Source of the DNA: Setoptus koraiensis
Taxonomy: Eukaryota > Animalia > Arthropoda
Reading direction: 5' to 3'
Assembly (NCBI GenBank): GCA_048013815.1
Contig: CM106586.1
Coordinates: forward strand, 21,452,001-21,516,000
Length of the DNA stretch: 64,000 bases
The stretch's first letter is position 1. The number at the start of each line of letters is the position of its first letter. Below are positions 17,395 to 36,000 of the stretch, piece by piece. A program made the position numbers and the translations under genes. The notes under the pieces were generated by a model that saw only the letters and a program-made list of their open reading frames with translations, did no database searches and was not told the DNA's origin.

Positions 17395-20300
17395 TCAATC
17401 ATCTAAGTACTCAAATGGCTCGGGTGGTTCGGGTTCTTTTTCTTCTCCAACTTTGGATCCATGAGCTATTACTGGTTCAATTAACTCCTCAGCTTCACTG
17501 GGTCTTGTATCCTTCATCAACATTATCCCTCCAATCGTAATGTCTTTAATTGGCTGATGGCGAGATCCCTCGGGCATCTGTATAACCTTCAACTGTTGCC
17601 TGAGCACTCTAGCTGGATTTGTTAAAATCTCAAAATTTGGCTCTTCCTTGGGCCTCTTGGCATCCTTGCTAGATTCCTTACTATCCTTTGCATCGTTAAC
17701 ATTAGCCTCGTCGGTGGCGCTGACTTGTTTCTTGCTTTTTCCATCCTTGGTGGACTCTTTATCTTTGGGTGAATCCTTACTACTTGATGATTTTGTTTCC
17801 GGTTTGCTAGAGGAAAGCCTACCGCTACTCGACACTTTAGAGTCATCAGCAGGTGCAGTCTTGTTGAATGGTTCCTCATCTATATCCATCTTCTCGATTT
17901 CATGTTGTCTGTCTTTTTTGTTGGCCTCCTTCTTTTTAGCCTTAGCAGTTATAGATAAAATCGCTGTGCTAACCTTCTCTCGTTCACGTTCTTTCTTCTC
18001 CTCTATCGGTGGTGGATAGGCAAATGTGGAGGGTTTCGCCCCAGAGCGGTATTCCATTTTTGGTATTTTCAAATCGGCATTTAATCCTACAATAAATGTT
18101 GGCGTGAACGCTAGTGATAGGAAATGTGTGAGCGGGTACCAATACCAGAATTGTGTGAATATCAGCATACCAACCACTGCACAAACGTTGGTATGGCCTG
18201 TTCTAGATTGTAATGAAACTGTCACATTACGTCCGCCAGCGTCTATAATTCCTTGAGCTAAAATTGCACCAAATTTCGCCATAACATCGTCATGCTTATC
18301 AGCGATAACTTTAGCATATAGTTGACGAAACTCTTTGACTTTGGGATTCAACACTTCTGTCTGCTGAATGAGAACTAATGCTGAGGCCACAAGAGCGCCT
18401 TGGCGGACAAAATTCACAGAATCATTTATCATTGGCTCGAGTAATGATATTGCTTCTTTGCTACCGGAACCAGCACAGCAAATACCAATTGCCATAGCGG
18501 CACCACATCTCACGTGTGGATTGTAGCTTTCCGATAGAAGGGATACGACATTGGGACATTGTTCGGGACTTCTGAAAAGAATAAATCCAATGCCTACGAC
18601 TGCGGCACGTCGAACATCGTCATTCACATCACTTACTGCGACATGCAAGAGTTTAGAGATGGCCTTATTATTACCCGAACCACAATATGCCATTGCGATG
18701 GCATGCATCGCTGCCCGACGTAGAAGAGCGTCCTTATTCGAATCTAGGGTTGCTATCATTTCATCTGCTTGTTCCATACAACCAAACATCATCAAACCAA
18801 TACCGATTGATAGGCCTCGAAGTATTTTTTCATGTTGAGTTTCCTGAGCATAGCTAACCATGTCGATGATAGCAGAGCGTGAATTAGAACCGAGCATCAC
18901 TAGACCCATTGCGATACCAGCTGCTTCTCCAGTTATGGCATCATCTTGGTAAAGATTGAACTTAATTTGATCATATATGTCATTTCGATTAGTACCCATA
19001 GCCGCTAGACCAACTCCCAGACAAGCTCCGTGCCTGATAGCTTCGTTTGTGGCGTCTTTCAGTTGATTCAATAAATACTCTATTATGGAAAGACCATGAT
19101 TCGCGTATATCAGACCCAGAGCGTACAAGGCACCTCCTTCAGTGTAACCTGTTGTCTGGCCATTTGCAGCTCCTGGGTTCTTGGGTAAGTATGGAGCCAA
19201 GAGATGTAGTCCATCATTTTCATGTCCATGGTGGATAACACCTAGGCTGGCTGTGGCGGTAAACTTGGCCCAATTAACTGCTCTGCCCAACCACTCGAGA
19301 TTGTCCCGCAGGAATGCGTCTGATGTAGTACCGTAATGCATGAGACCATTAGCTATAACTGTTGCTGAATGGCAAATAGAATTTCTTACTGAATCTTTAG
19401 TGTGTTTGAGTATTAACAAATCGGCATGGTTTTTGCGTATCATGAATTGGAGCTGCAGTTCGATTGTAGTTTCACCGTGCAAAATAGTCGCTAGCTTCAT
19501 CAGTCTCTCTTGACGGGCTTTTTCGGTATCACTCAGACTCTCAAAGAGGTCCCCAGTTGTAGCCTTGGTAGATTCGGCGACCTCCGCAGACGGGGCTTCT
19601 TTGGAGCGGGATGTTTTTCGCTTCTTGCCACCAGCCTCTGTTGCCGCTTTAGCTCCTTCGGCTCCATCAATTTCCATCCTGGTTTCATTTTCTGCATCAC
19701 TCCCAGCTTCGCTGCAACTGGTGGCTTCTGACTCGCCTCCCTCAGGTCCATGTTCAGAATTCTCAGATATGGGTGTGTCGCCGATAGATTGGTTAGCTCC
19801 AACTAGCGTGGGTAATGGAGCAAAAAGTCTGATTGCTTGAATGACTCTTATGAGGAATTGTTGTGTACCGGACTCGTATAAATCGAATGCTATTTGATAG
19901 GCCATAAGATAGTCATCGGGATCATCAGTTTTGGTAAGCTTGTTCAACATGGCGCCAACTGATTGAGCATCATCGAGAAATATTAAGCATTGAATCATAT
20001 TAATATAATCTGGTTTTTCGAGATTTCTATACAAGCGTACTAGTATACGTAGTATGTCATCACGAAATTTTCGATTTTCCATAAGTGACATGCAGACATT
20101 AAATGCGTATGATAGCATTGCTGAAACATCTGTAGATTCTGTGATTGCCTTCTCAAATATATCCATTCTACGTGTTTCTAGAGCAAGTCCAAGAACTTGC
20201 TTGTATTGATGATGTTGGAAGCATCTCTCGAACATACGATTGACAATGCCCTCAAGGCGCGGATCAATGTCAATGTGTTTAACTTCTTCGCCTGGTTTTA

Positions 20301-20655
20301 GTGACAAATTATAAAGACGATGTTTGGCGTATTGATCGATACATTTGCTAATAATAGTGTCAACATATTCCGATTGTTGATTAATATCGAACAGCTGATT
20401 GGCACTAATGGCAAATGCGAGACAATCATCAAAACTGCCTAAATGATAATAGATTTTACTTGCCAATAGAGCGGCTAAATTTCTATTCCTAAATCCTTTG
20501 TCTTCGCATAATGATTCTATCTTGACTATAGCATCAGAGATTTCTGGCCAGAATTCGTCGACAATGCCATTGAGCTGATGTAGAGCGTATTCCTTAAGAT
20601 CCTGGCCACTCTCGTCCAATAGGGATATGATACCTGAGGCGGAGGTGATTTTCAT
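17395..20655 (-). CDS. PSMD1: 26S proteasome non-ATPase regulatory subunit 1 (Rpn2), single exon, ~1086 aa
   Basis: Colinear with human PSMD1 from start to end: [42 protein letters not shown] repeats ([32 protein letters not shown]), [23 protein letters not shown]-terminal [13 protein letters not shown]. The ATG at 20655 matches the orthologue start; the ORF-track TTG extension to 20757 is low-complexity. Confidence 0.98.
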
Positions 20656-21964
20656 CTTGTCCGGCTGTTGGTGCTGGCGATAATATTGTTGTAATAGAAC
20701 GGTTGGTATATAATATCGTTGTTGTTGTATTTTATAATAGTGATTGTTGCGGGCCAATATCGTTGAGCTGATACAACAAACGAGCGTGAATATTTGTGAA
20801 TATCTCTATGGTAAATGGATTCAATTGGCGTCAGTGTCGAGCATAGTTGACAATGTGTGTAGAGGACGATAATAACGTTGATAATATTGACAATATTAAT
20901 AGTATTGGCGATAATAATGGCGATATCGACGACAATGGCAATTGAATGCGGACAAGTGTGATAAATCGAGTGCCCTGCGTGTCGATTGCCGCAGCCCAAT
21001 GCAGCCTGACGCAGCCTAGCGCAGCAGCCAGAGCAGCCAAAGGACCAGCCAAAGGCGACAGCGAGCGTTCAGCGTGTCCCAGCGTCATTGGTCGGCGGCA
21101 GCGTTGCGCGCAACGGCGCTGGGCAGCCCTTGTGTTTGGCACACGGCGAACGAGACACAGGAGACACACACACACAAACACACGCACACACAAACTGTTT
21201 GTGACAAACACACAAGCACACACAGTGCGAATCTTCGCACTGTATTTGTCCGGCACAGCGGTGCGGTGCAGTGTGCGCACAAGCGGCATTGCCGATCGTC
21301 TTGTGATGTGCGGCAACAAAGCGGCACTCGGCGGCACAGTGCGCACACCGCCGGCCTGGCAACAGCCAGGCAACTGTGCCAGTGGCTGCAACAGCTGGCG
21401 TCCTTTGTCGCTTTGTGGCGTTCGCTGCGCGCTTGTGCGCATGAGCGGCCAGCGGGGGGAGGGCACCATTGGCGAGAGCGTGCGCCAGGCCAGAAAAGTT
21501 CCATTGCGCGCCCCCCCCATCGCTAGAAATGTTGGCCGCCGCTGCCGAATGTTCGCTGGCAGCGAACATTCGGCGATTGCCGTTGGTCGCTAGTTCGCTC
21601 AGCGGGCTCATTCGACAATCGAACTTCAGGGCGTCAGGGTTGCGCGCGGTCAGTGCAAATGAGTTTCAGCAATTGTTCGCCAATCAGCAAGCCAGAGCGC
21701 GACTATTCGCAACAGCATCAGCATCAGCAGCAGCAGACGAACCGGCAGATCACCAGTTACATCATCAGTTACTAGCGACTCGCAGCAGCATCACGTGAGC
21801 CCCGACACAAAGTTACATGATGCACCCGTGATACAAGCCCGGCAATGACCCGACTATGCACACGACTACACACGACACACAATATACATCACATAATAAT
21901 AATAATTCGTCGAATAATTAATTAGTGTCCTCATTGCGACAGATTGAGCCATCAAAATCACGTC

Positions 21965-23112: not shown

Positions 23113-25407
23113 TCAATAGTTTTGTTTGAGCAGCATCGGACATAGATGTCGTTTGAAGCTTCCGTGTAGAGCTCGCGCGCTACAATAAGTCACCATGTTT
23201 GCTACAATGAGTATCGCGGGAACAATAACAATATCTATTCGCTCTAGAACAGGAACAAAACTGGCCATAACAAATGTCAAAAATACAATCATTAGCGATG
23301 TTGGCCAGCATGCCAAGCAATTATCCATTCGCTTATCTAGCCTGTATATTGTTGAAACAAAATTGATTGCCATCAATGAGCTCACAAATCGCGATATTAA
23401 AATGACCAGCGAGTAAAGCCAAGCTAGCTCAATTAGGTGATTGTCTCGGCGAACAATGCTCATAAATGCAAATTGAATAGTTAGCCACAATGAGCAGCCC
23501 CTCGTGATAGACATGAGCCAATTCAATTGAAAGTATCTGTAGCTTAGATTTTTCCAACATTGCAACAATAGGGCCGCTATTTCCATGGGCCAGCCATTCA
23601 ACAGGGTGGACACATAGAGCAATTTTAGTGGATTCCATGAACAACTCATGACAATGCTGGCGTAAGCGCCCAGTGTTACGTAATCGTTGTTATTATTATC
23701 ACTATTAGCATATTGCTGTTGTTGCATCGGCGTTGTCTTCTCATCTGTGAAATTATGATTAGTTAAATTGTGCATGATGAGATAATTCATACTGACCGTT
23801 GCAAACGTCATGTTGAGCAGGCATCTAAAAGTGCCGTTCTTAAACGGTAGATAGTTGTGCTGGCTCACGGATGTTCCGCTCCTCGCTTGCTGATCTCGCT
23901 GGCGACCACGAATATTGTCCAGGGCAATAATTGAATTTGCATTTGGAGCGTATCCGGCGTGCGCTGAGTGTCCACTGGTCGAGTTTGTTTGGCCCATGGA
24001 GCAAAACTCGCAGCTTGTGATTGTCACAAACAGTTTGCCTCTCGGTCTACCGATGGAGCCCGGATCATGTTGCCTATCGGTAATGTCGTCAATACTGTTG
24101 TTGTCGTCGATATTTTGCTGTTGAAACAGCTCATAATTTGAGTTAAATGTCAGCAACAATTGGTGCGCTAACGCAACAACGGCCGCAAATATAATCAGCC
24201 AATTTAGCAGTGAGCTCAATTGCAACCACGTTTGCATCGTTCTCATGGCAACCAGGGGCCACAGCGCTATGACCAGCGCATACAAAAGGGGCACCGTCTC
24301 GGCGATGTGCCCGCCAATTGTGAGCCTGTCGGTTAAATTGTCGCCGGCAGGTCTCAGCATGAGCATTATGTGACCAGCGAGCATGGATCGGACTAGGTTG
24401 CCGGCCAGATACAACTGGTACGAATTGGTTGTTTTGTCGTGCTTGTGCCACAATTCGGTGGCCAGTGTCACCTGAGCGCAAAACAGGCCCGCCAGCAGCA
24501 CCGTGTCGGGCAGCCTGACCGCTGCAGTGTTGTCGGGCATGAGCCGGCTTGGCGCGACCGCGGCAGCCCCATAATGGGCGCCTCGATCACGCGGGTATGC
24601 CGCCGGGTTGTCGGTGTCGTCGTCGTCGCCGTCGTCCATATCCCAGTCGTCGTCGATACTGGGCGATACCGCAATTGTGTCGCTGTCGTCGATGAGCGTG
24701 TCGTCTATGACGCCGGTTGCATAATGAGCTCTGGGGCTCTCGGTCGATACCCATCTCGCCCACAGTGCGGCCAGCAGGTAGCCGAGGGCCATCGTGAAGG
24801 GCAGCAGGCAGCGCAGCCAGTGGCGCTGACACACAAGCTCAAACTGGGGCACCAGCGACAATGTTGCCGAGATTGTCTCGAATCGCCAGCCGTATCTGCA
24901 GGGTTCCAGTTGGCCCATTTCGACGAGCAGCGACGAATCGTGGTCACTGCTGTTGGTCGTTTTATTATCTCTTGTTGTTTTATTGAGTGCGCCATCGGTG
25001 GCTGTGTCATTGGCACCGCTGGTTGGCGACGATGAGCCGCTCATTTTGTATTCGAAGCAACGGCTTATGTCATCGTAATAAAATTGCATCACTCTCGCCC
25101 TGGCCACTGTGTCCAAATCGTCGGTGTTGGCCTGAACGAAATGATGCCAGTACACGTTTTTGCTGCGCTCGTCATTGTTGCTGTTTGTCGATGAATTGTG
25201 ATGATTGGTGATTGGCGATGTGATTGGCGCTGTCATTGGTTTGTCCTGGCGATCGAGAGTGAAATTTTCTGGCGGCGCACACCAATAGTCTACGGGCCAC
25301 AGCAGCAGACATAGCGAATGAAAGTTTATAAATACAATCGATATGGCCAGCAGTGTTGTCGCCTTGCACAATATATATCCGCCACTCGAGTGATTGATAA
25401 TTATCAT
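23113..25407 (-). CDS. Divergent SLC22/organic cation transporter-like MFS membrane protein, single exon, 764 aa
   Basis: N-terminal TM followed by a large glycosylated loop with the four SLC22 cysteines (DYWC, SRCFEY, EPCRYGWRFE, VPQFELVCQRHWL), then TM2 (LLPFTMALGYLLAALW) and about 10 further hydrophobic segments. The ATG is the first after an in-frame stop. Confidence 0.8.
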   Translation of the reverse strand: MIIINHSSGGYILCKATTLLAISIVFINFHSLCLLLWPVDYWCAPPENFTLDRQDKPMTAPITSPITNHHNSSTNSNNDERSKNVYWHHFVQANTDDLDTVARARVMQFYYDDISRCFEYKMSGSSSPTSGANDTATDGALNKTTRDNKTTNSSDHDSSLLVEMGQLEPCRYGWRFETISATLSLVPQFELVCQRHWLRCLLPFTMALGYLLAALWARWVSTESPRAHYATGVIDDTLIDDSDTIAVSPSIDDDWDMDDGDDDDTDNPAAYPRDRGAHYGAAAVAPSRLMPDNTAAVRLPDTVLLAGLFCAQVTLATELWHKHDKTTNSYQLYLAGNLVRSMLAGHIMLMLRPAGDNLTDRLTIGGHIAETVPLLYALVIALWPLVAMRTMQTWLQLSSLLNWLIIFAAVVALAHQLLLTFNSNYELFQQQNIDDNNSIDDITDRQHDPGSIGRPRGKLFVTITSCEFCSMGQTNSTSGHSAHAGYAPNANSIIALDNIRGRQRDQQARSGTSVSQHNYLPFKNGTFRCLLNMTFATVSMNYLIMHNLTNHNFTDEKTTPMQQQQYANSDNNNNDYVTLGAYASIVMSCSWNPLKLLYVSTLLNGWPMEIAALLLQCWKNLSYRYFQLNWLMSITRGCSLWLTIQFAFMSIVRRDNHLIELAWLYSLVILISRFVSSLMAINFVSTIYRLDKRMDNCLACWPTSLMIVFLTFVMASFVPVLERIDIVIVPAILIVANMVTYCSARALHGSFKRHLCPMLLKQNY

Positions 25408-27020
25408 TTTGGCCCAGATACGCTCGGTCAGCTCGTATCAGCCGGTGGCTCTCGTTTGTGGCCTCATTGTGTCCGCAAGCTCACACAAACACACTCATCT
25501 CGCCTTTAAATTTCTCCCTGTATATAATCAAATCGTATCGGTGTATTGAATTTCACACACACCCAGGCCGAGATTTGATTTCACACAACAGCGTCTGTCT
25601 ACTCGATCTGTCGGTGTGTCGCCAGCCAGCTCGTTAGCTCGCTGCCAGCCGTCGTCTCGGCGGCCGTCGTCTCGGCAGCGGCTTGTTGGCCGTGTCATGT
25701 CATGTCATATCGTCTGATTGGATTTTGCGCAAGTTGCAGCCACTGGCGCAAACTTGCCGTCAATGCTGCAAAATAATGAAATGGAAATGTCTTTATTTTA
25801 ATCCGGCCACTGACAGTGTGTGCGGCTGACAGTAGCAGCTTCTTTTCCACTCTGACGGGCTTCTTTTTGACAGCGACACACGGTGATACATTTGTTGGCC
25901 CAACATCGCAGTTCAACAGATCGGCGGCCAGCCGGGCACCGATCGCAGCCACCAAGTGCCATCGGCCTGCGACGACCAATATCTGGATGAATTAATCAAC
26001 GTCATGCACAATGACAACTTGCTGGCGCGGCCCTCCGCCGCTGCTTTTCGCAGCCACTCGAACCGAGTGCACCGATGCTGGCGCTGATGCGATTCGCCCG
26101 CCGCTCGAAGCCTCAGAGCGAGCGTTCCTTTTTCAAACTTGTTGCCACCAATTGCTCAACACCCAACACTGGACATGACCGGGCCGTCGAGCTGCGCGAC
26201 CATCGCATCAGCGCCACATCAATCCACGGCAGACGCAACAATCCAACATGACAGCCAAGCGCATTGGGGAGACGCGGTCAGCGTCTCGAAACAATTTTTC
26301 AACAACTCCTTGAATAGGTGTGAGAAACATGATGTTACATAACATCATTCGGTTGGCCGGCATGCCATTAGAAGGCCATTTCACACTCAATCACTGCCAC
26401 TGATTGAAGCGCTCGCTAGAATGCCTTTCAATCCGTGTGCTCTCCTTTGTGAGCGCCAACCAGCCAGCCAACCAGCCAGCCTACCAGCCAGCCAGCCAGC
26501 CTAACTTATTTAGCGGCCCATTATACAGCGCATTACATAATGCGTTTCCATTGCCCGGCACAACTGGCCAACTTGTGCCGCTTGTTGCTAAATTGTCAAT
26601 GATGTGTGGCGAAATTGAATTGATTGTCCATTTCTGCTCCTATTCCATTCATCGCGCATTCGTCTCGAGCCGAGACTGCAACTCGAAGGCCGCTCGAAAG
26701 GCGAATTCCTGGCCGCTCATTGCGCCAACAAACGGCCTGCATGATCTAATTAATGCCCGCTCATTGTGCTCGCACTGCATCGCTCCGACGGCCGAGAATC
26801 GGCGCTCGAACGCTCCGCGAACCTCGATCTTCTTCGAAGCGTTCGCAGCTTCCGCGGCGTTCGAGCCGTTCGAGCCGCTCGAGCCGGCCGAGCCATTCGA
26901 GGCGTTCGAGCCGGCCGGGCACTGTTCGCGGCCAACAGGTGCATATTTCAATGAGAGCGGAACAGGCGATTGTCGGCCGGCCGCTCGGCATTGTCCGCGC
27001 CGGCGGCTCATAATTGCACG

Positions 27021-27152
27021 ATGCCGGCCAACATGCTAATATTAGCCGGCCGCTCCATGTTGTTGCTGGCATCAGTTTTGTTGTTGTTTGCTGCCGTCGG
27101 TCCATCTTATCTGAGTGTGCAAACAGATAAAAGTTGGCAAGTTTGCCATTGA
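27021..27152 (+). CDS. Candidate signal-peptide exon, possibly the 5' exon of the Shisa-like gene
   Basis: MPANMLILAGRSMLLLASVLLLFAAVGPSYLS has a hydrophobic h-region. Phase-1 GT donors that could join 28606 exist but are weak (non-GTRAG). Confidence 0.3.
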   Translation: MPANMLILAGRSMLLLASVLLLFAAVGPSYLSVQTDKSWQVCH

Positions 27153-28605
27153 GTCGGTGTGTCTCTGTTTGGACGACGAGATCGCTGTCTCTCGGCGCAG
27201 CAGCTCGCCAGAGAATCGCGGCCAGCAAGGAAGTTCGCGAGGAATTTATTAGCAGGTATTTACAACCATTAATTAGTGGCCATGTGCGATACGTTGCAGC
27301 GTCTGCGTTCCGTTTGTGAGTCTCGTTGCTGAGTTCGAACGCTCCACTGCAAGTGTGTCCCGCTCCGAGCCGCTCCAACTCTGAGCCGATGCGCCGGCCG
27401 CATGAGCCGACCCGGGACAGGATGGCCGGCGCTTGCCGTCCCGACCGTGATTGGCGTGTCGGCGGGCCGCTGTCCCGCCTGTCGTGTAAATGTGTGCGCC
27501 GATCGGCACACCGTTAATCATTTCGCTGGCCCGATCTATTTATGTTTTGATATTCATATGTCACAGGCCTGTGTCAGGTAGGGCTCATCATTAATTATGT
27601 GTCGATGATGATGATCGGACATGATTAATTGAAGTTGGCCGCTGCAATCTGGCCGCGGTCGCAGTCATTACTGACAAGACTTTGTGAGAGCCGGGTTTGC
27701 TGTTCGAGCCGCGAGCCGCCCGGCCGCCCGGCTGTCCGGCCGCAGACAGTGACACAAATGATATTAAAAGCGACACTCTCGTGCGCCATTATCTATTATC
27801 TCTGGCTCTGGCCGTCGAGCATGCCATTCGGCCCGCAAAGCAACCGTTGGCTGCGCGGTCGCAGCGTCTCGCTGTCGAAGAACAAAAACTCTCGCCCGTT
27901 CGCGTGTTCTCCCCGATTCGAACGTCCTTCGAATTTGAATGCTTTCAAATTTCACATTTCACATTTCAAGTTTCAAATGTTTTTTGAATTTTGAATTTTG
28001 AATTGCCAGTTGGCGATTCAAATGGCGGCTGTGGCCGCACGGTGGCCACACCGCTTGACGCGCAAACAAAGCTGATGTTTGTGTGTGTGTGACAGGCGAA
28101 TCAATGGCAACGCCAACAACAAACAAATGACCAGATATGACCAGATAATACCTGTCGCAGCAGCAGCGTCGTTTGACGTTCGCCCTGGCGCCAGACGCCA
28201 GGCCAACAAGTGACACAAGACACAGATAAAAGAGCGCACACCAGCCTGTGTGTGTGTGTGTGTGATATCTGTCAGACGCGATACAAGCCAACAGGTGACC
28301 ACTGGTCACTTTTGCCTGTTCGGCTGTCGCGTCTGCGGGCCGGATTGGCGCGCCAATGCGGCCATTCTCAGCTCGGCTGAGTTTGGGCCTGTGCATGCGC
28401 AATTGGCGATTCCGCCTATTATGCAATGCAAATACATTTTGCCATTTTTCAGCATGCTCGCTTTCTCGTCTGGCGTCGTTGTCGGTCGCACATCGGTGCA
28501 TCGGCACATCGGCGCATCGGCTGACACAACGTCGGCCATCTAATCGCATCAACCTGCTAACGGCGCTGTGATTTCAATCACCGGTCACCATCACCACAAC
28601 CGTAG

Positions 28606-29639
28606 ACGCAGCCGAGGAGCGGGCGACATACGCGCCCGAGAGCGCGCTTCCGTGGGCCGCTCGGGCGCGCCACTGGACGGCCCGCGGCACCGCCGATGAT
28701 GACGGGACGCTCGGCAACGGGACAACGCGCAGCGACAACGGGACAACGCACAGCGACAGCGGGACGACGCACAGCGACAACGGGACAGACGATAACTGGC
28801 TAGACAAGAGCTGCAGTTGGGACCAGGAGCAGTGCCAGTACAGCGCGGATCCCGGCGTGCTGATGACGCACAACAGACTGTGCCAAATAAGCAAGGACAC
28901 CTACGTGCTGTGCCACCACTATTGTTGCGGCGAATTCTGGGAGTCCCATTACAAGTACTGCTGCCAGCACAATTTCCGGCCCGTCCGAAGCACCTTCTTT
29001 TTTCTGCTCAGCGCCTTCTTGGTGCTGTCGTTTTACGCCGTGTGCCATCTCGCCGTCGAGATAACTGTCAAACGGTGCGTCACTAAGCAGCTGATCGCCG
29101 CCAAGGCCGCCAGCACCGACGATGACGACTCGCACAATGCGCTCACCAACGGCCTCCACAGCAGCACCATGTCGGGCATGTCGGGCAACAGCACCACCGA
29201 CGAGGAGGTCGAGGAGGAGCGCCTGCAGACGCACATCAAGCAAATTTTGCGCAAGAACTCCGAACAGCACCACCAACAACAGCAACAACAACGGCAGCAG
29301 CAACAACAACAGCAACAACGGCAGCAGCAACAACACCAGCAACAACACCAGCAACAACAGCACCAACAACAGCAGCAGCAACAGCAGCGGCCCCGCTTGG
29401 CTCTGCCCTCGCTCGCGGCTCGCGCTTCCGGCGGGCCGTCCCCTCCGCCGGCGAGCGGTCGGGCCGGCCCAACCGCCAGACCGTCGGCCAAGCGGGCCAC
29501 GGTGACGCCGCGGGCGCCCAACGAGCGAGCCGGTTCGCCGGCGCACGTGTTGGCGGCCACCAAATCGGGCAGCTCGGCGCGCATCCTCAGCAATTTCAGG
29601 CGCTCGTCCAAGCGCAAGATGACGCGCGGCAAGCGATGA
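28606..29639 (+). CDS. Main (terminal) exon of a single-pass membrane protein with a Shisa/WBP1/VOPP1-like Cys-rich ectodomain and polyQ cytoplasmic tail; 5' exon not resolved
   Basis: The frame is open from 28572 to TGA at 29639 with no ATG until 28863. Candidate acceptor CCGTAG|AC at 28605/28606, with a CTAAC branch-like motif ~45 nt upstream. It encodes NGT/SGT glycosylation-type repeats, CSWDQEQC..LCQISKDTYVLCHHYCCGEFWESHYKYCC, a TM (TFFFLLSAFLVLSFYAVCHLAV), an acidic patch, polyQ and a basic C-terminus. ATTAAA at 29697-29702. Confidence 0.72.
29265..29390 (+). repeat. CAA/CAG polyglutamine-coding repeat inside the Shisa-like CDS
   Basis: Encodes EQHHQQQQQQRQQQQ...QQQQQQQQR. Confidence 0.92.
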
Positions 29640-32109
29640 AGTCAGTGGGGCCAGATCGCCACCAGCGGTCAACCGGAAAATGATCGATTCAATTCAATTA
29701 AAGCAAGCCGCTCGCGGGGCGCATTGAGTCGCACGAGTTGTCGCAGTCGCGATATGCGATGAAAATCTCAATCAACGACCATCTCGAGCAAACGATGATC
29801 TCGAGCACGCGGTTCGGCGTTGTCGCCCCCGCGATACGTATCCACATATCGATATTCATATATGTGCTCAGTATTCATATGCAGTTTGTCTGTGTGTCTC
29901 CCATCGTGTTCCGTGGCCGGCCCGCAGTCGGCGCTAACGGCTCCGTCCTGCGGCGCTTGCGCCGCTGCTCGGTCGGCCTAATCCGCCAACTGACAATTTA
30001 AGCCGGCTAGTTTGGCATTGTGTATCATTGTTGTCGTTGTTGTTTTTGTTGTTGTCTTTGCTGTTGTTGTTGTTTTGAAAGGGCACGTCAGATTAGCAAC
30101 AAGTCAGTCGCATCTAATGATAGTCGTGTTGCCCGAGCGCGCATCTGCCCGCGACTCGCGCCGGCCGAGCCGGCCAAATTCGCCGAATTGGCCCGACTGG
30201 CCCGACTGGCCGTCGTATGGTCGGCAGCGGCCGGCGCTCATGCATGGGACAGGCGCATCCAGTGGACGCTGCAAATAGTATCCGCTGTTTAGCGGATAAC
30301 GGACAGAGCCTAATGGCACTAATGGCAACAATAATAGCTATAACGAGCGTAATAACGAGCGCAATAATGAGAACAGCAACAGCGCAACAATTAATGCGCC
30401 CTCCTCCTCGTGATGAGATATCGCTCATCAAGTCGGCAATATCTGGCTGGCATTATTCACAATTATTCACAATTGCGTGCCCCCCTCACAACGTGGCCGC
30501 GGCATTTGCAACAATGTAACTGTGCCGTCTGTCACGGGCCGGCCGGCCCGCGTGATGGCGAGCTGCTGTTTGCTCAGGCTCGCCATCACGCCAAATGGTT
30601 GCGACAGCAATTATTAGGCGACACACATAGTGATCGCTATGCTGCCATCGCATCGTTGGATATGTCGGCGAGACTAGCTGCAAATTGTAATGTCGTCGTC
30701 GTTATGTCACACAATCGCCAGAGTCAACAACAATTGCTGCCATTATCGCTCATCGTGCGAGTGGCTCGACGCGATAATTACCATTGTGTTCGTTTGTTTG
30801 TTTGTTGTTTGTATACAAAGGCACTTTTAATTGAATAGCGCCGTTTCGTTGTGTTCCAATGAATTGTGAATTGTGTGTCATAACATTATCGTAGACAACA
30901 ACAATTGCGGGCAAACACACACGAGAGAGATAAATATCACGTTGACGTTGACGAGCTGGCCGTGACACTTGTCAGCTTGTTTGTCATTCGCACACAATTA
31001 TACAACGTTTAAACGTTCATACATTTCGCGCATTCGGCAAACATTCAAATCGATGTGTCTATCATCGTCGTATGTGTCTATCATCATCGTATGTGTCTAT
31101 TATCAGTGGCATAATAGCAGCGCTATTTGGCGTGTCTGCACGGATCCATCCGGCAATTCGATGCGACAATGCAACAGACAGAGTGACAGCGGCCAAATGT
31201 CAGCACCTAAAGCGACGAGCGGATCGAGAGCGAGCACCGGAAGTGATCCAACTGTTGGAGTGGGCCGGCCGGCCAACGCACAACGCAAACACCGCCCGCG
31301 ACACCGACACCGACACCGACGACGACACCGACACCGACACCGACAGCCTGTTGTGCTCTACATGTTGTGCTCGGCATGTAGCGCTCGGTTTGTGACAGTT
31401 ATCAGCGCCATCTCACTCTCATTATCTGTTTGTAGCTGTGCAGCTGACGCAGCGAACGCGCTGGCGAGTCGGACAGCCGCAAATTGTCGCAACGCCGCCA
31501 ATTGTGTACTACATTATGCCTGCCGGGCGTGTATTATGTCATACGTTTGTGTTTGTACTCACGTCAGTTTATCCGCACACTGACACAGACGAACTGATGC
31601 GCGGATTCGCAGCCAAATGCACAGCGCAAATGCATCACTGATGCAGTGTCAGACGCGACAGCTGCCGTTTGCGCTGCCTGGCGGCCGCGCGGCGACACAT
31701 CCGACGGTGCGCCCGGCGACGATGCGCCCGAGCGTCGGGACGGCGACCCGTCCAGACGATGCCCGCAGCGCCGATGAGCGCACTTGCGACTGACCGGTGC
31801 GGCCGGCGCGCGACGGTCAGTTGCAAGCAGCGATCCCGTCGGCGGCGAGCAGCCGATCGCGGGCGCGAGCAGCGACAGTCGCTCGCAATCACGCGGTTTG
31901 CCGCTCGCCGCTGACGGGATCGCAGCGCCGGATCGCAGCGCCGGATCGCAGCGCCAGATCGCAACTGGCAGCGAGTCAGACGCGACCAGTCGTCGTCAAA
32001 TTGCGACTTGTCGGCCCGACATGAGCGACACCTTTGACAGACAGCTCAACTCTCGCCTTTGGAGGCGCCCCCGGAGCCCGAATCAAGCAAGGAAACTGGC
32101 CGCCATCCT

Positions 32110-32890
32110 TGCAGCCCAAAGCCGCCGCCAGCCTCAAGACTCATCGGTCCAGACGGGACAGAAGCGAGATCAAGTGCGCTCAAAAAGGTACCAGTTATCA
32201 CGGAATTTGGTTTTGAATTTCTCCCGGCGCATTGATGTCACAACTGGGCCAACTCTTCGCTCGTTACCATAAGAAAGAATTGTCTGGATTATTGAGAAAA
32301 ATTAAATTTTGCTGTTCCGGCAATCGCTGGCTCAGGCCTGTCCAGGAGATGTGCAGAGAGCTCAATTGGCACGTATCTCTCGAGTCGGATAGGACTTTGG
32401 CCCAATGCTCGGTACGGCACAACATTGAGACCGTGCAATTCTACACAACGTCGTCATATGCACACCAGCAACACGGTTGAGCAAATTGAGGGCATATCAT
32501 TCAATTTCCTGGACCACGTTGTTGGTGTGAATATGACGAATTGTTGCAGAATTGTGTGGTCTAGATGTTGTGAGGTACCAAGGATTGGGCCGTCTGTTGA
32601 GAGTGAAATTTGGCACGAGGGATACATGACAATGGAGATCCTCTGCACGTCTCCTGTGTAGGTTTAAGCCAGCCGATTGTCTGATGGGCAGAATTTAATT
32701 TTTCTATATGATCCAGATAGTTTTTTCTTATTGTTGCGGCCGAAGAGTTGGCCCATTTGGGACATCAATGCGCCGACAAAACCCAAACCAACCCGCCCGA
32801 TATACGGTGCCATTTTATGCGCGCTTGATCTTGCTTCTTTCTCATCTGTACTGATGAGTTGCGGCCATGTCGATGGCTCGGCGCTGCGAA
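32110..32890 (+). ncRNA. Long imperfect inverted repeat (fold-back); candidate hairpin RNA
   Basis: Left arm ~32110-32489 is the reverse complement of right arm ~32501-32890, with an ~11-nt loop (GGGCATATCAT). Shared blocks include GGCGCATTGATGTC, TGGGCCAACTCTTCG, AGAAAAATTAAATT, GGCCCAAT, TCGTCATAT. Roughly 70-75% identity by eye. Confidence 0.6.
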
Positions 32891-32941
32891 ACTCAAAAAC
32901 ACCCATGATGCAATATAACTTTATGCCTATCAATAAATTGT

Positions 32942-33056
32942 AAATATGCCGTGAATACGCCGTGAATATGCCGTGAATACGCCGTGAATCTGCCGTGAAT
33001 CTGCCGTGAATGCGTCGTGAATGCGCCGTGAATGCGCCGTGAATATGCCGCGAATG
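32942..33056. repeat. 11-bp minisatellite (GAATATGCCGT)n, ~10 copies, next to the fold-back
   Basis: Read directly from the sequence. Confidence 0.92.
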
Positions 33057-36000
33057 CAGCCCGACAACAAGTGCATCAGTGACCAGCTTGACCGGTGGTC
33101 GGCGCACAACAAATATTGACACTTGGCCGTCGATTGTCCGCGCCACTCGACAATGGGCGCTCGCCCGGGCCTGACCGAGCCTGTTGTCGCTGTTTGTTGT
33201 TGTCCCAACACTCGTCTCGCCGTCAACAGCCGACAGCGGTTGCGAGTCTGACAGCGGTTGCGAGTTTGTTGTTGTGCGCCAGTCGACAACAACAAACAAC
33301 CTGTTTGAACCAAGCTCAATTTCTGTGCGATTTCTGTGCGATTTCGGGCCGGTCTCGGCCCGGTTTCGGGCCGGTTTCTGGACGGCGCGCGGATAATGAC
33401 CGCTCATGCACGGCGTCTGTGCATGCGAGACACGCCGGCCGCCACCAACAAAATTGCAAAATGCGAGCGCCCTCCCGGCGAAATCTTATCTAATCGCGAG
33501 TTCATCTCGCCACTAATCCGATTCACGGCCACTCCGGCGCGGCCTCGCCGGCCGCGTCTCACCGCGGCGATCTCACCGCGACGATCTCACCGAGACGATC
33601 TCAGTGCCCGTGCGTGTGCTGACCGCACCGGCAACATCGGCGCTATCATGTGGGCTATCGTGTGGCTGTTACGGCATCATTGTGTGTGTGTTGTTGCGCG
33701 TTGAATTGTGTCCGAGCGACACGACGGCCGGCTTCGCATGATTGATTGGATCGTTAATTTATGGTCGCCGGCCAATAAATTAGCCCGCCCGTAGCCCGGC
33801 CGCACCGTCTGGTAGCCGCGTACGCAAGCCAATGGCGGCCGCGTATGCGAGCGGCCGAGAGCGGCCGAGAGCGGCTGCGGTCGGCGAGCGTGATTTGCAA
33901 GATGAGCCGAGATTTCATTTAATTTATGTGATTGCTCATGTCATCGGCGCTCGTAATTGACTTTCGTCCGGCCTGTGCACTTGTGACTCACTAGTTGTGA
34001 GACTCGGCAGCCTGTTCATTATGAACAGTTCATATCGCCCTTCGGATGTCCATGTTTCGTGGCCTAAACGACACGCCGATGCAAGCGGCTAATGGCTTGT
34101 TTCTCGCCATTATCGCTCCATTCGGCTGCCCAATCTCGGCCAGTCTGGCTCGCTCGCAAGCAGCGCTCGTCAGCGTTGGCCCGAAGCCAGATTGTTATTG
34201 ATATTGCGCAACATTGATAGTTCGGACGCAGTGACCATGCTGCACACTGGCCATTAAAGTGCGCGATAAACTCGCAGCTCCAACTGCCGCCGCTCGGCTC
34301 GCGAATCGCCGCGTCGGCGCTAATCGCGGCCGCGGCCGGCCAACGGACCGGCCAACAGACCGCCGAAAACTGACCGCTCGAGACAGACCGACAAGAGCGG
34401 ACAGCCGATACACAAACCGCTTCGGGCCAGCGCCGCCGCGCCATTCACAACATGAGCAACAAGTGTCAAAATTATGACTCATTAATCAACTAATGAGCTC
34501 GCCCGCCACACACACAAATGTATAAATAACTAGCCATAAATACGCCGCAAACAGATGCTACCGGCCGACCGGCCGGCGTCGGCTTCACTCGTGAATTCGC
34601 GCCGACATTCGCATATTTATATGTATTTTTCGCATATAATACGACATTCGTGTGCAACATTCATGCACAATATTCATGCGTTGTAGGCGATATTCATGTG
34701 CGACAGTCTCAGGCGATATTCATGTGCGACAGTCGCATGCAATGTCCATGTGGTGTTCGTATGTGATAGCCGATGAATCATGATGAATCGTGGTGAATCA
34801 TGGTGAATCATGGTGAATCATGGCCCGCGATTCGTGATTCACGGCCCGTGATTCATCGGCCGATTTCTGCGCTGCGCCAGCCTCTGCGAATCGCGCCGAT
34901 TGTGCCAACGGTGGCCCGATTCGCTAATTACGATAATTACTATAATTGGCAGCAGTGGCACATTTGCAGCCTCCAACTGTCGCTGTGCGCGCCAGTGTCG
35001 CTGCTCCGTTCCGGCCCGGTCGGCCGATCCGGCCCAAGCTCGCGCGGTCGCGCATCGGAGCGGTCGAGCGTCGAAGCGGATGCGGCCAGTTCGGCGCGCC
35101 GGCCGCACATTGCCCGTCGAGGGCGACACTGAAACTAATCGATTTGCACACTCTGTGTAAGTGCAGTGGGCACAGTGCCATTGTCTTTGGTGCCATTTTC
35201 GGTGCGTGTGCGACACGGCGCATTAGCCGGCACCCAGTGGTTTTAATTTGCACGAGCCGCCGGCCCGTTCGTGCAATTATGACAGCTCCCGAGTTGGCAG
35301 CGCGAACCCGTTTGCACGCGGCCCGTGCACGCCGCGCCGCCGCAGCCAGACACCGTCAAAACTCGTCCGAAAGGAACTCACAATTTAAATTTCGAGACGC
35401 GGCGAGTTTGGCAAATTTGCGAAATTGGCGAACGCGCTCTCTTCCGTATGGGTTTGCGCCGCTGTTGTCGTTGTTGTCGGTGTTGCTGTTGCCGGTGTCG
35501 CTGATGTCGCTGCCGTTGTGTTCGCGACGACCCATTGGGCCCATTCAGCGAACCTCCGACAACTCTAACAATGGACGCATTGATTTCTCATTTGCATACT
35601 GCCATTGTTGCAGCGACTGTCGCTGTCGTTGTCGCTGTCGTTGTTGTTGTCGTTGTTGTTGTCGTTGTATGCTCAGTGTTTTGTGCCCAGCGTTGTGCTC
35701 CATGTTGTGCTCCATGTTGTGCTTTCAACGTGCTCGAGAGTGTTGTCGTTGGCGATGTTTGTGTCGGTGTTAATCTAGTTAACTCCGGCCCGACAACTCA
35801 AGCATCTGGCATCATTATCGGCGACACTATAAACATTATAATTTACAAACGCGCCTCGCAGGTAACCAAACGGACACTGCGCCGCGTTCGCAGTTCGCAA
35901 GCAACAGCTTGCTCGCCTCTGGCGGCCAGAATCCGGCAACCAGAGTCTGGCAACCAGAGTTCGGTTGGCGGCCACTCCAAGCCACTTGAGCACTGTTGGC

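Follow-up and report, generated by a model that had tools for sequence, protein, structure and literature searches.

Near the middle of a 64-kb stretch of DNA from Setoptus koraiensis (64,000 nucleotides, hereafter the window), a sequence is followed almost directly by a diverged copy of its own reverse complement. The original prediction held that this fold-back is an old inverted duplication that is kept as a + strand RNA duplex. The question raised by the locus is whether such a role, or an origin without function, accounts for the structure and for the differences between its arms. If the hairpin makes small RNAs, it would open a way to study endogenous RNAi in a group of tiny mites that feed on plants and whose siRNA pathway has been reported as missing or rewired, a matter that bears on RNAi-based pest control.

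A single-copy inverted repeat with an 11-nt centre

Reading of the sequence and local alignment placed the imperfect inverted repeat at positions 32111–32887 (777 bases, 11-nt centre). At the centre of the palindrome, AAATTGA (32483–32489), GGGCATATCAT (32490–32500) and TCAATTT (32501–32507) follow one another. When the left arm was aligned with the reverse-complemented right arm, identical bases made up 284 of the 375 aligned positions (75.7%, gap columns left out), and 5 indels contributed 16 gap columns. Minus-strand self-BLAST yielded 72.3% identity over 794 columns with gaps counted (E = 5e-132), and the best blocks obtained by repeat finding were 102 nt at 81% and 91 nt at 77%. Exact alignment thus confirmed the predicted architecture of a fold-back with a loop of ~11 nt, 70–75% identity between arms, and a few small indels. 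Identity was roughly even along the arms, at 22–34 matches per 40 columns (55–85%) and without a gradient toward the loop; neither a homogenised core nor gene-conversion patches between the arms were seen along the alignment. Divergence of the arms by ~24%, corresponding to ~0.29 substitutions per site (Jukes-Cantor), agreed with the description of the element as an old inverted duplication, of which structure and age were hereby established.

No other long inverted repeat was detected in the window, which bore out the view of this element as its sole long fold-back. The next in size was a weaker, 195-nt palindrome at 31781–31967 (~70% complementary, GC ~70%). This palindrome is located 145 nt upstream of the hairpin, overlaps a 13-nt repeat, and folded at −126 kcal/mol on the + strand and −118 kcal/mol on the − strand.

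Table 1. Features in and around the inverted repeat; positions are counted from the first base of the window.
Feature	Position	Strand	Description
Left arm	32111–32489	+	379 nt; from alignment with the reverse-complemented right arm and repeat finding
Centre/loop GGGCATATCAT	32490–32500	+	11 nt between the arms; from sequence reading and repeat finding
Right arm	32501–32887	+	387 nt; from local alignment and self-BLAST
Inner two thirds of hairpin	32229–32771	+	+ strand G:U excess concentrated here (25 vs 6)
AATAAA hexamer	32932–32937	+	45 nt past the right arm; possible poly(A) signal, by inference only
80-codon ORF (MGVFEF...NRLA)	32667–32906	−	Intact, overlapping the outer right arm; gene status not supported
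26S proteasome subunit RPN2 gene	17395–20757	−	Intronless, complete, 1120 aa; RPN2_N, PC repeats, RPN2_C
Orphan gene, 764-aa ORF	23113–25407	−	No Pfam domain

Copy number was analyzed in the two runs that contain the locus (X3 and X1), which were compared over positions 29600–35400 (5.8 kb); a further run (X7), which bears the same species label, gave microsatellite matches only and was uninformative. Word depth in X3 and X1 was even over the whole 5.8 kb, non-coding minisatellite DNA included, thus indicating that both runs behave as genomic DNA, whatever their label. Run searches brought up no RNA run with the locus. Depth over the hairpin equalled that of its flanks (161 in X3; 48–160 in X1), and no contigs with at least 85% identity piled up on the arms in either run. 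Since hairpin depth equals flank depth in two DNA runs, the hairpin is single-copy DNA at 85% identity or more. Sensitive BLASTN detected no further arm copies in the 64-kb window. The many dispersed, high-identity copies expected of a fold-back transposable element were therefore absent, and a multi-copy fold-back transposon was ruled out by the depth data at this level of identity.

Descent from a non-autonomous (MITE-like) transposon, of the fold-back or fully palindromic type, that entered GC-rich intergenic DNA a single time and then decayed was considered improbable. Such an origin would fit an element that is palindromic up to a tiny loop and differs in composition from its flanks, as an insertion would. 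Against it stand the depth over the arms, the lack of contig pile-up and of a second copy in the window, and a Pfam search in which no transposase-like ORF was found. Moreover, neither a target-site duplication nor a recognisable terminal motif was present at 32111 or 32887: the arm boundaries (...ATCCTT/GCAGCC and GCGCTGC/GAAACT) share no common direct repeat, which is weak evidence at 24% decay.

Some differences between runs were observed around the hairpin. The minisatellites on either side of it differed in length: one unit of the 13-nt array at 31917–31963 (3.6 copies) was missing in both X1 and X3, and a low-depth X3 contig joined 32893 to 33061, thereby skipping the 11-nt array at 32943–33055 (10.3 copies). 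A minor X3 contig (depth 36 of 129) showed seven clustered differences and a 1-nt insertion at 32854–32904, in the outer right arm, and could derive from another haplotype or from a short similar sequence located elsewhere. The CGACAC-type microsatellite at 31299–31345, which drew contigs from all four runs at depths of up to 1870, is a widespread repeat that unrelated organisms in the runs also carry.

Genomic setting, reading frames and origin of the arms

The hairpin has a GC content of 48% and a CpG observed/expected ratio of 0.90, close to the 0.93 of the window's genic part, whereas its flanks have 56–58% GC and ratios of 1.29 and 1.42. Because its composition resembles genic DNA rather than the flanking DNA, the element seems to be a copied-in piece of ordinary DNA. 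Its surroundings are dense in minisatellites with 10–28-bp units, as is intergenic DNA elsewhere in the window; the possibility that the flanking minisatellites are parts of the element was therefore rejected. Over positions 26000–64000, which are GC- and CpG-rich (CpG ratio 1.3–1.4), tandem repeats with periods of 10–28 bp are very dense, with 64 TRF rows in 18 kb. A subtelomeric location was also rejected, as no telomere repeats occur in the 64-kb window. ORFs between 26 and 40 kb are probably not genes, since Arg/Ala/Ser-rich strings occur there in all frames.

The original prediction placed the hairpin in a repeat-rich desert. This description holds for the density of minisatellites and the scarcity of genes, but not for the conserved blocks that are present at 25.5–28.2 kb. 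The RPN2 gene lies in a block of 38–43% GC, the adjacent gene-poor DNA having 55–63% GC. For the 764-aa ORF, exactly one homologue (P0003, 737 aa), with 53% identity and present in a single Logan run, was found among 5.8 billion proteins; this ORF is a lineage-restricted orphan gene. A 6.7-kb Logan contig (L001, run SRR33593474) encodes the homologue. It aligns collinearly with 22.2–28.2 kb of the window, and its end lies 3.9 kb away from the hairpin. Positions 25523–28196 of the window, upstream of the orphan gene, and 103–2680 of L001 share collinear, non-coding-looking blocks with 61–88% identity, in a relative whose orthologous protein is no more than 53% identical; these blocks would be either regulatory DNA or unannotated exons.

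Related partial reading frames in the two arms had been taken to hint at an origin from a coding gene or transposable element. The peptide strings are indeed present in both arms, but neither a homologue nor a codon pattern was found that would point to such an origin. A 2-nt indel and a stop interrupt the left-arm copy of the 80-codon ORF. A word-indexed search of 5.8 billion proteins returned no homologue of this ORF. An exhaustive HMMER search against 1.84 billion representatives returned two matches, both of them repeat proteins whose scores were summed over 5–6 weak stretches and one of which resembles a PsbY polyprotein; these were rejected as repeat-inflated false hits. Pfam contained no family for the arm ORF, matches in the protein atlas were at noise level only (best score 0.57), and no exact products of three hairpin ORFs were on record in public assemblies. 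Differences between the arms showed no codon-position pattern, with 18, 14 and 20 on positions 1, 2 and 3, respectively. In the absence of a homologue, a domain and a codon-position pattern, an origin from a protein-coding gene or pseudogene fragment was not supported. No parent or target of the arms was found in the 64-kb window or in the protein searches. A miRNA precursor was rejected: no Rfam family scored above its gathering score, the sole match being mir-5014 at the hairpin tip, at chance level (25.2 bits vs a gathering score of 101).

The reading favoured here, to which we give about even weight, is that the element is an inert, single-copy relic of an inverted duplication. A ~380-bp piece of ordinary, gene-like composition would have been duplicated head to tail in inverted orientation, through fold-back or template-switch replication or through repair of a hairpin-capped break. 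The outcome would have been a palindrome whose centre is tiny, set in intergenic DNA that is rich in GC and CpG and dense in minisatellites; the arms of this palindrome then drifted evenly to a difference of ~24% without sign of gene conversion. We infer both this mode of origin and the absence of function. The even identity of the arms, the large unpaired fraction of the stem (see below), the lack of a parent, target or family match in the searches described above and the failure of the run searches to bring up an RNA run with the locus were counted in favour of an inert relic. In addition, the base rate for function is low because long inverted repeats are abundant in invertebrate genomes, with 297,317 recorded in LIRBase for 77 such genomes (PMC8728187).

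Strand-biased G:U pairs and folding of the two strands

In the exact alignment, the differences between the arms comprised 31 transitions with G:U pairing in a + strand transcript, 15 with such pairing in a − strand transcript, and 45 transversions (binomial p = 0.026). An earlier hand count of 29, 13 and 36, respectively, was thereby reproduced. With five gap-penalty settings, 31–32 G:U transitions were counted for the + strand vs 12–15 for the − strand (binomial p = 0.004–0.026). The predicted wobble asymmetry thus survived exact alignment and a binomial test, at a modest level of significance. A G/T skew of the surrounding DNA was checked as an alternative cause. Keto (G+T) skew was −0.03 and 0.00 in the flanks (5–6 kb on each side), and a regional mutational strand skew was therefore ruled out.

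The excess of + strand G:U pairs was located in the inner part of the hairpin (Table 1). In the outer third (118 bp), 6 such pairs were counted for the + strand and 9 for the − strand, a difference in distribution that was significant (Fisher p = 0.009) in what was a post hoc split. Within the inner ~260 bp, G or T was carried about equally by both arms (14 T/G and 11 G/T pairs); since both contribute, hypermutation of one arm was ruled out. No clear deaminase-type signature was seen at the G:T sites (T then G in 12 of 31). The 25:6 asymmetry of the inner part, combined with flanks that lack a bias, was counted against an inert relic. So was the consideration that a transition asymmetry of 4:1 exceeds the usual mutation bias associated with transcription.

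Transition:transversion ratios were ~1 in both the inner (31:29) and the outer part (15:16), thus suggesting that transitions were redistributed between strands and that disruptive changes were not depleted. This pattern suits strand-asymmetric mutation or repair at least as well as purifying selection, with limited weight in view of the small counts. If the element is an inert relic, its + strand excess of G:T-type differences would be either sampling noise in a hairpin chosen among many or a trace of strand-asymmetric mutation or repair. A more specific scheme starts from intrastrand hairpins that arise on one strand in the course of replication; unequal correction of G-T and A-C mismatches between the arms would then preferentially erase one class of transitions without involvement of any RNA. 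Although such a DNA-level repair artefact would, speculatively, explain redistribution of transitions without depletion of disruptive changes, the arm identity shows no homogenised patches, and we consider it very improbable.

Folding of both strands with RNAfold showed that, as anticipated, the + strand folds better: minimum free energies of the whole hairpin were −442.6 kcal/mol for the + RNA and −396.4 kcal/mol for the − RNA. In the + strand structure, all 321 pairs were on the main hairpin diagonal. The inner two thirds, with −318.3 kcal/mol (+) vs −270.1 kcal/mol (−), accounted for the energy difference between the strands. As a null model, 400 perfect palindromes were simulated with the observed numbers of transitions and transversions and strand-symmetric decay. 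The simulated difference between strands had a standard deviation of 23 kcal/mol, so that the observed value of −46.2 kcal/mol corresponds to a two-sided p of 0.0475.

Counting G:U pairs, uninterrupted helices of 24, 20 and 19 bp were found on the + strand, vs a maximum of 15 bp on the − strand, and 21-nt windows with at least 19 paired positions numbered 110 vs 22. When 31 of the 46 transitions were drawn randomly, the observed helix-length statistics were reached in 1.7–3% of trials (p = 0.017–0.03 given the counts). In a coin-flip model in which the better strand was taken, they were reached in 0.15–0.5% of trials (p = 0.0015–0.005 overall). This placement of G:U sites where helices lengthen was counted against an inert relic. 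However, these permutation tests were devised after the data had been seen, and the stronger p-values came only from such post hoc tests. The pre-specified tests, binomial (p = 0.026) and energy-based (p = 0.0475), were only marginal, which was counted for an inert relic.

Pairing of the + strand stem was far from complete. Even with G:U pairs, which make up 8% of its columns, 76 of 391 columns (19%) were unpaired, consisting of 45 transversions, 15 A:C-type transitions and 16 gap columns, and only 25 of 371 21-nt windows had at least 20 paired positions. Strong selection for a duplex would not be expected to produce a stem with 19% unpaired columns and few well-paired 21-nt windows.

Two further observations were counted against an inert relic. 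The sole fixed difference in the stem, 32322 A>G in X3, lies opposite 32678 and converts an A:U into a G:U pair on the + strand, so that pairing is kept on that strand only; this single event fits the + strand trend. Furthermore, an AATAAA hexamer follows the right arm on the + strand. With 14 such hexamers on this strand in the 38-kb GC-rich part of the window, one so close amounts to a coincidence of roughly 1 in 25.

Together with the G:U counts, the folding energies, the longer helices and the placement of G:U sites, and with flanks without keto skew around a single-copy locus, these two observations make a + strand long hairpin RNA locus that yields small RNAs a tentative candidate. Such a locus would be transcribed rightward, perhaps as far as the AATAAA at 32932, and its RNA would fold into an imperfect ~380-bp stem closed by an 11-nt loop. 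Dicer would cut its better-paired inner part into small RNAs, and selection or transcription itself would have let G:U-preserving transitions build up on the + strand. Engineered hairpins with 18–26% G:U pairs still trigger RNAi (PMC9263138), which is consistent with this proposal. The unpaired 19% of the stem argues against it, as do the failure of the run searches to bring up an RNA run with the locus and the modest significance in view of the many hairpins screened in this genome. Moreover, the one eriophyoid mite studied in this respect, Aculops lycopersici, yielded no clear AGO2, R2D2 or RNA-dependent RNA polymerase, and its siRNA pathway was considered to be either missing or non-canonical (PMC7738191), a situation that may not hold for the present species. 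A further possibility, which we regard as rather unlikely, is that the inner ~260 bp are maintained as a + strand hairpin RNA that enters a non-canonical small-RNA route, in a mite lineage that may be without canonical AGO2, R2D2 and RNA-dependent RNA polymerase, and acts on a target elsewhere in the genome.

The + strand G:U bias of the hairpin, which was chosen among many, is real but modest. Because the hairpin is one among many hairpin candidates in the genome, p-values of 0.03–0.05 are not compelling. Maintenance of the hairpin as a + strand RNA duplex, a claim that draws on statistics at this level (p ~0.03–0.05), is unproven; sequence alone cannot tell selection on an RNA stem from strand-biased mutation. 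The locus can serve as a cautionary example, in which a G:U pattern was confirmed by exact count and its statistical weight is modest.

Comparison with known systems

Drosophila hpRNA loci that give rise to endo-siRNAs were reportedly described by Okamura in 2008 and Wen in 2015. The present hairpin resembles them in being a single-copy long inverted repeat in an arthropod, with a short loop and arms of a few hundred nt, and in that G:U pairs make one strand the better folder. In contrast to Drosophila hpRNAs, its stem is much less paired (81%, G:U included), and no target was found in the searches performed. Hallmarks of Drosophila hpRNAs are Dicer-2-dependent duplex reads of ~21 nt, defined transcript ends, accumulation of the primary transcript in dcr-2 mutants, and antisense homology to the genes of origin (Vedanayagam 2023, PMC10317233). 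Of the features of hpRNA loci, only the fold-back architecture was observed here. A further difference is that the host lineage may lack canonical AGO2 and R2D2 (PMC7738191).

As an imperfect long inverted repeat, the element is of the kind collected in LIRBase, of which thousands occur per invertebrate genome, mostly with unproven function (PMC8728187). It falls just under the thresholds applied to these entries (arms of at least 400 nt with at least 80% matches), and its centre of 11 nt is unusually short. With fold-back or palindromic MITEs it shares an inverted-repeat organization that extends over the entire element and leaves a minimal centre, its non-coding nature, and a composition unlike that of the flanks. 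Unlike these elements, it is single-copy by depth, is not bordered by a target-site duplication, and has no other copy in the window.

Engineered G:U hairpin transgenes provide a parallel: their C-to-T-type differences disrupt the palindrome at the DNA level, yet the stem of the RNA remains paired through G:U (PMC9263138). In these constructs, all differences are of the G:U type and are confined to one arm (PMC9263138), whereas in the present hairpin G:U pairs represent approximately one third of the differences and are split between both arms. By analogy with the engineered hairpins, the many other mismatches of the stem might be an obstacle to RNAi, but its 8% of G:U pairs would not.
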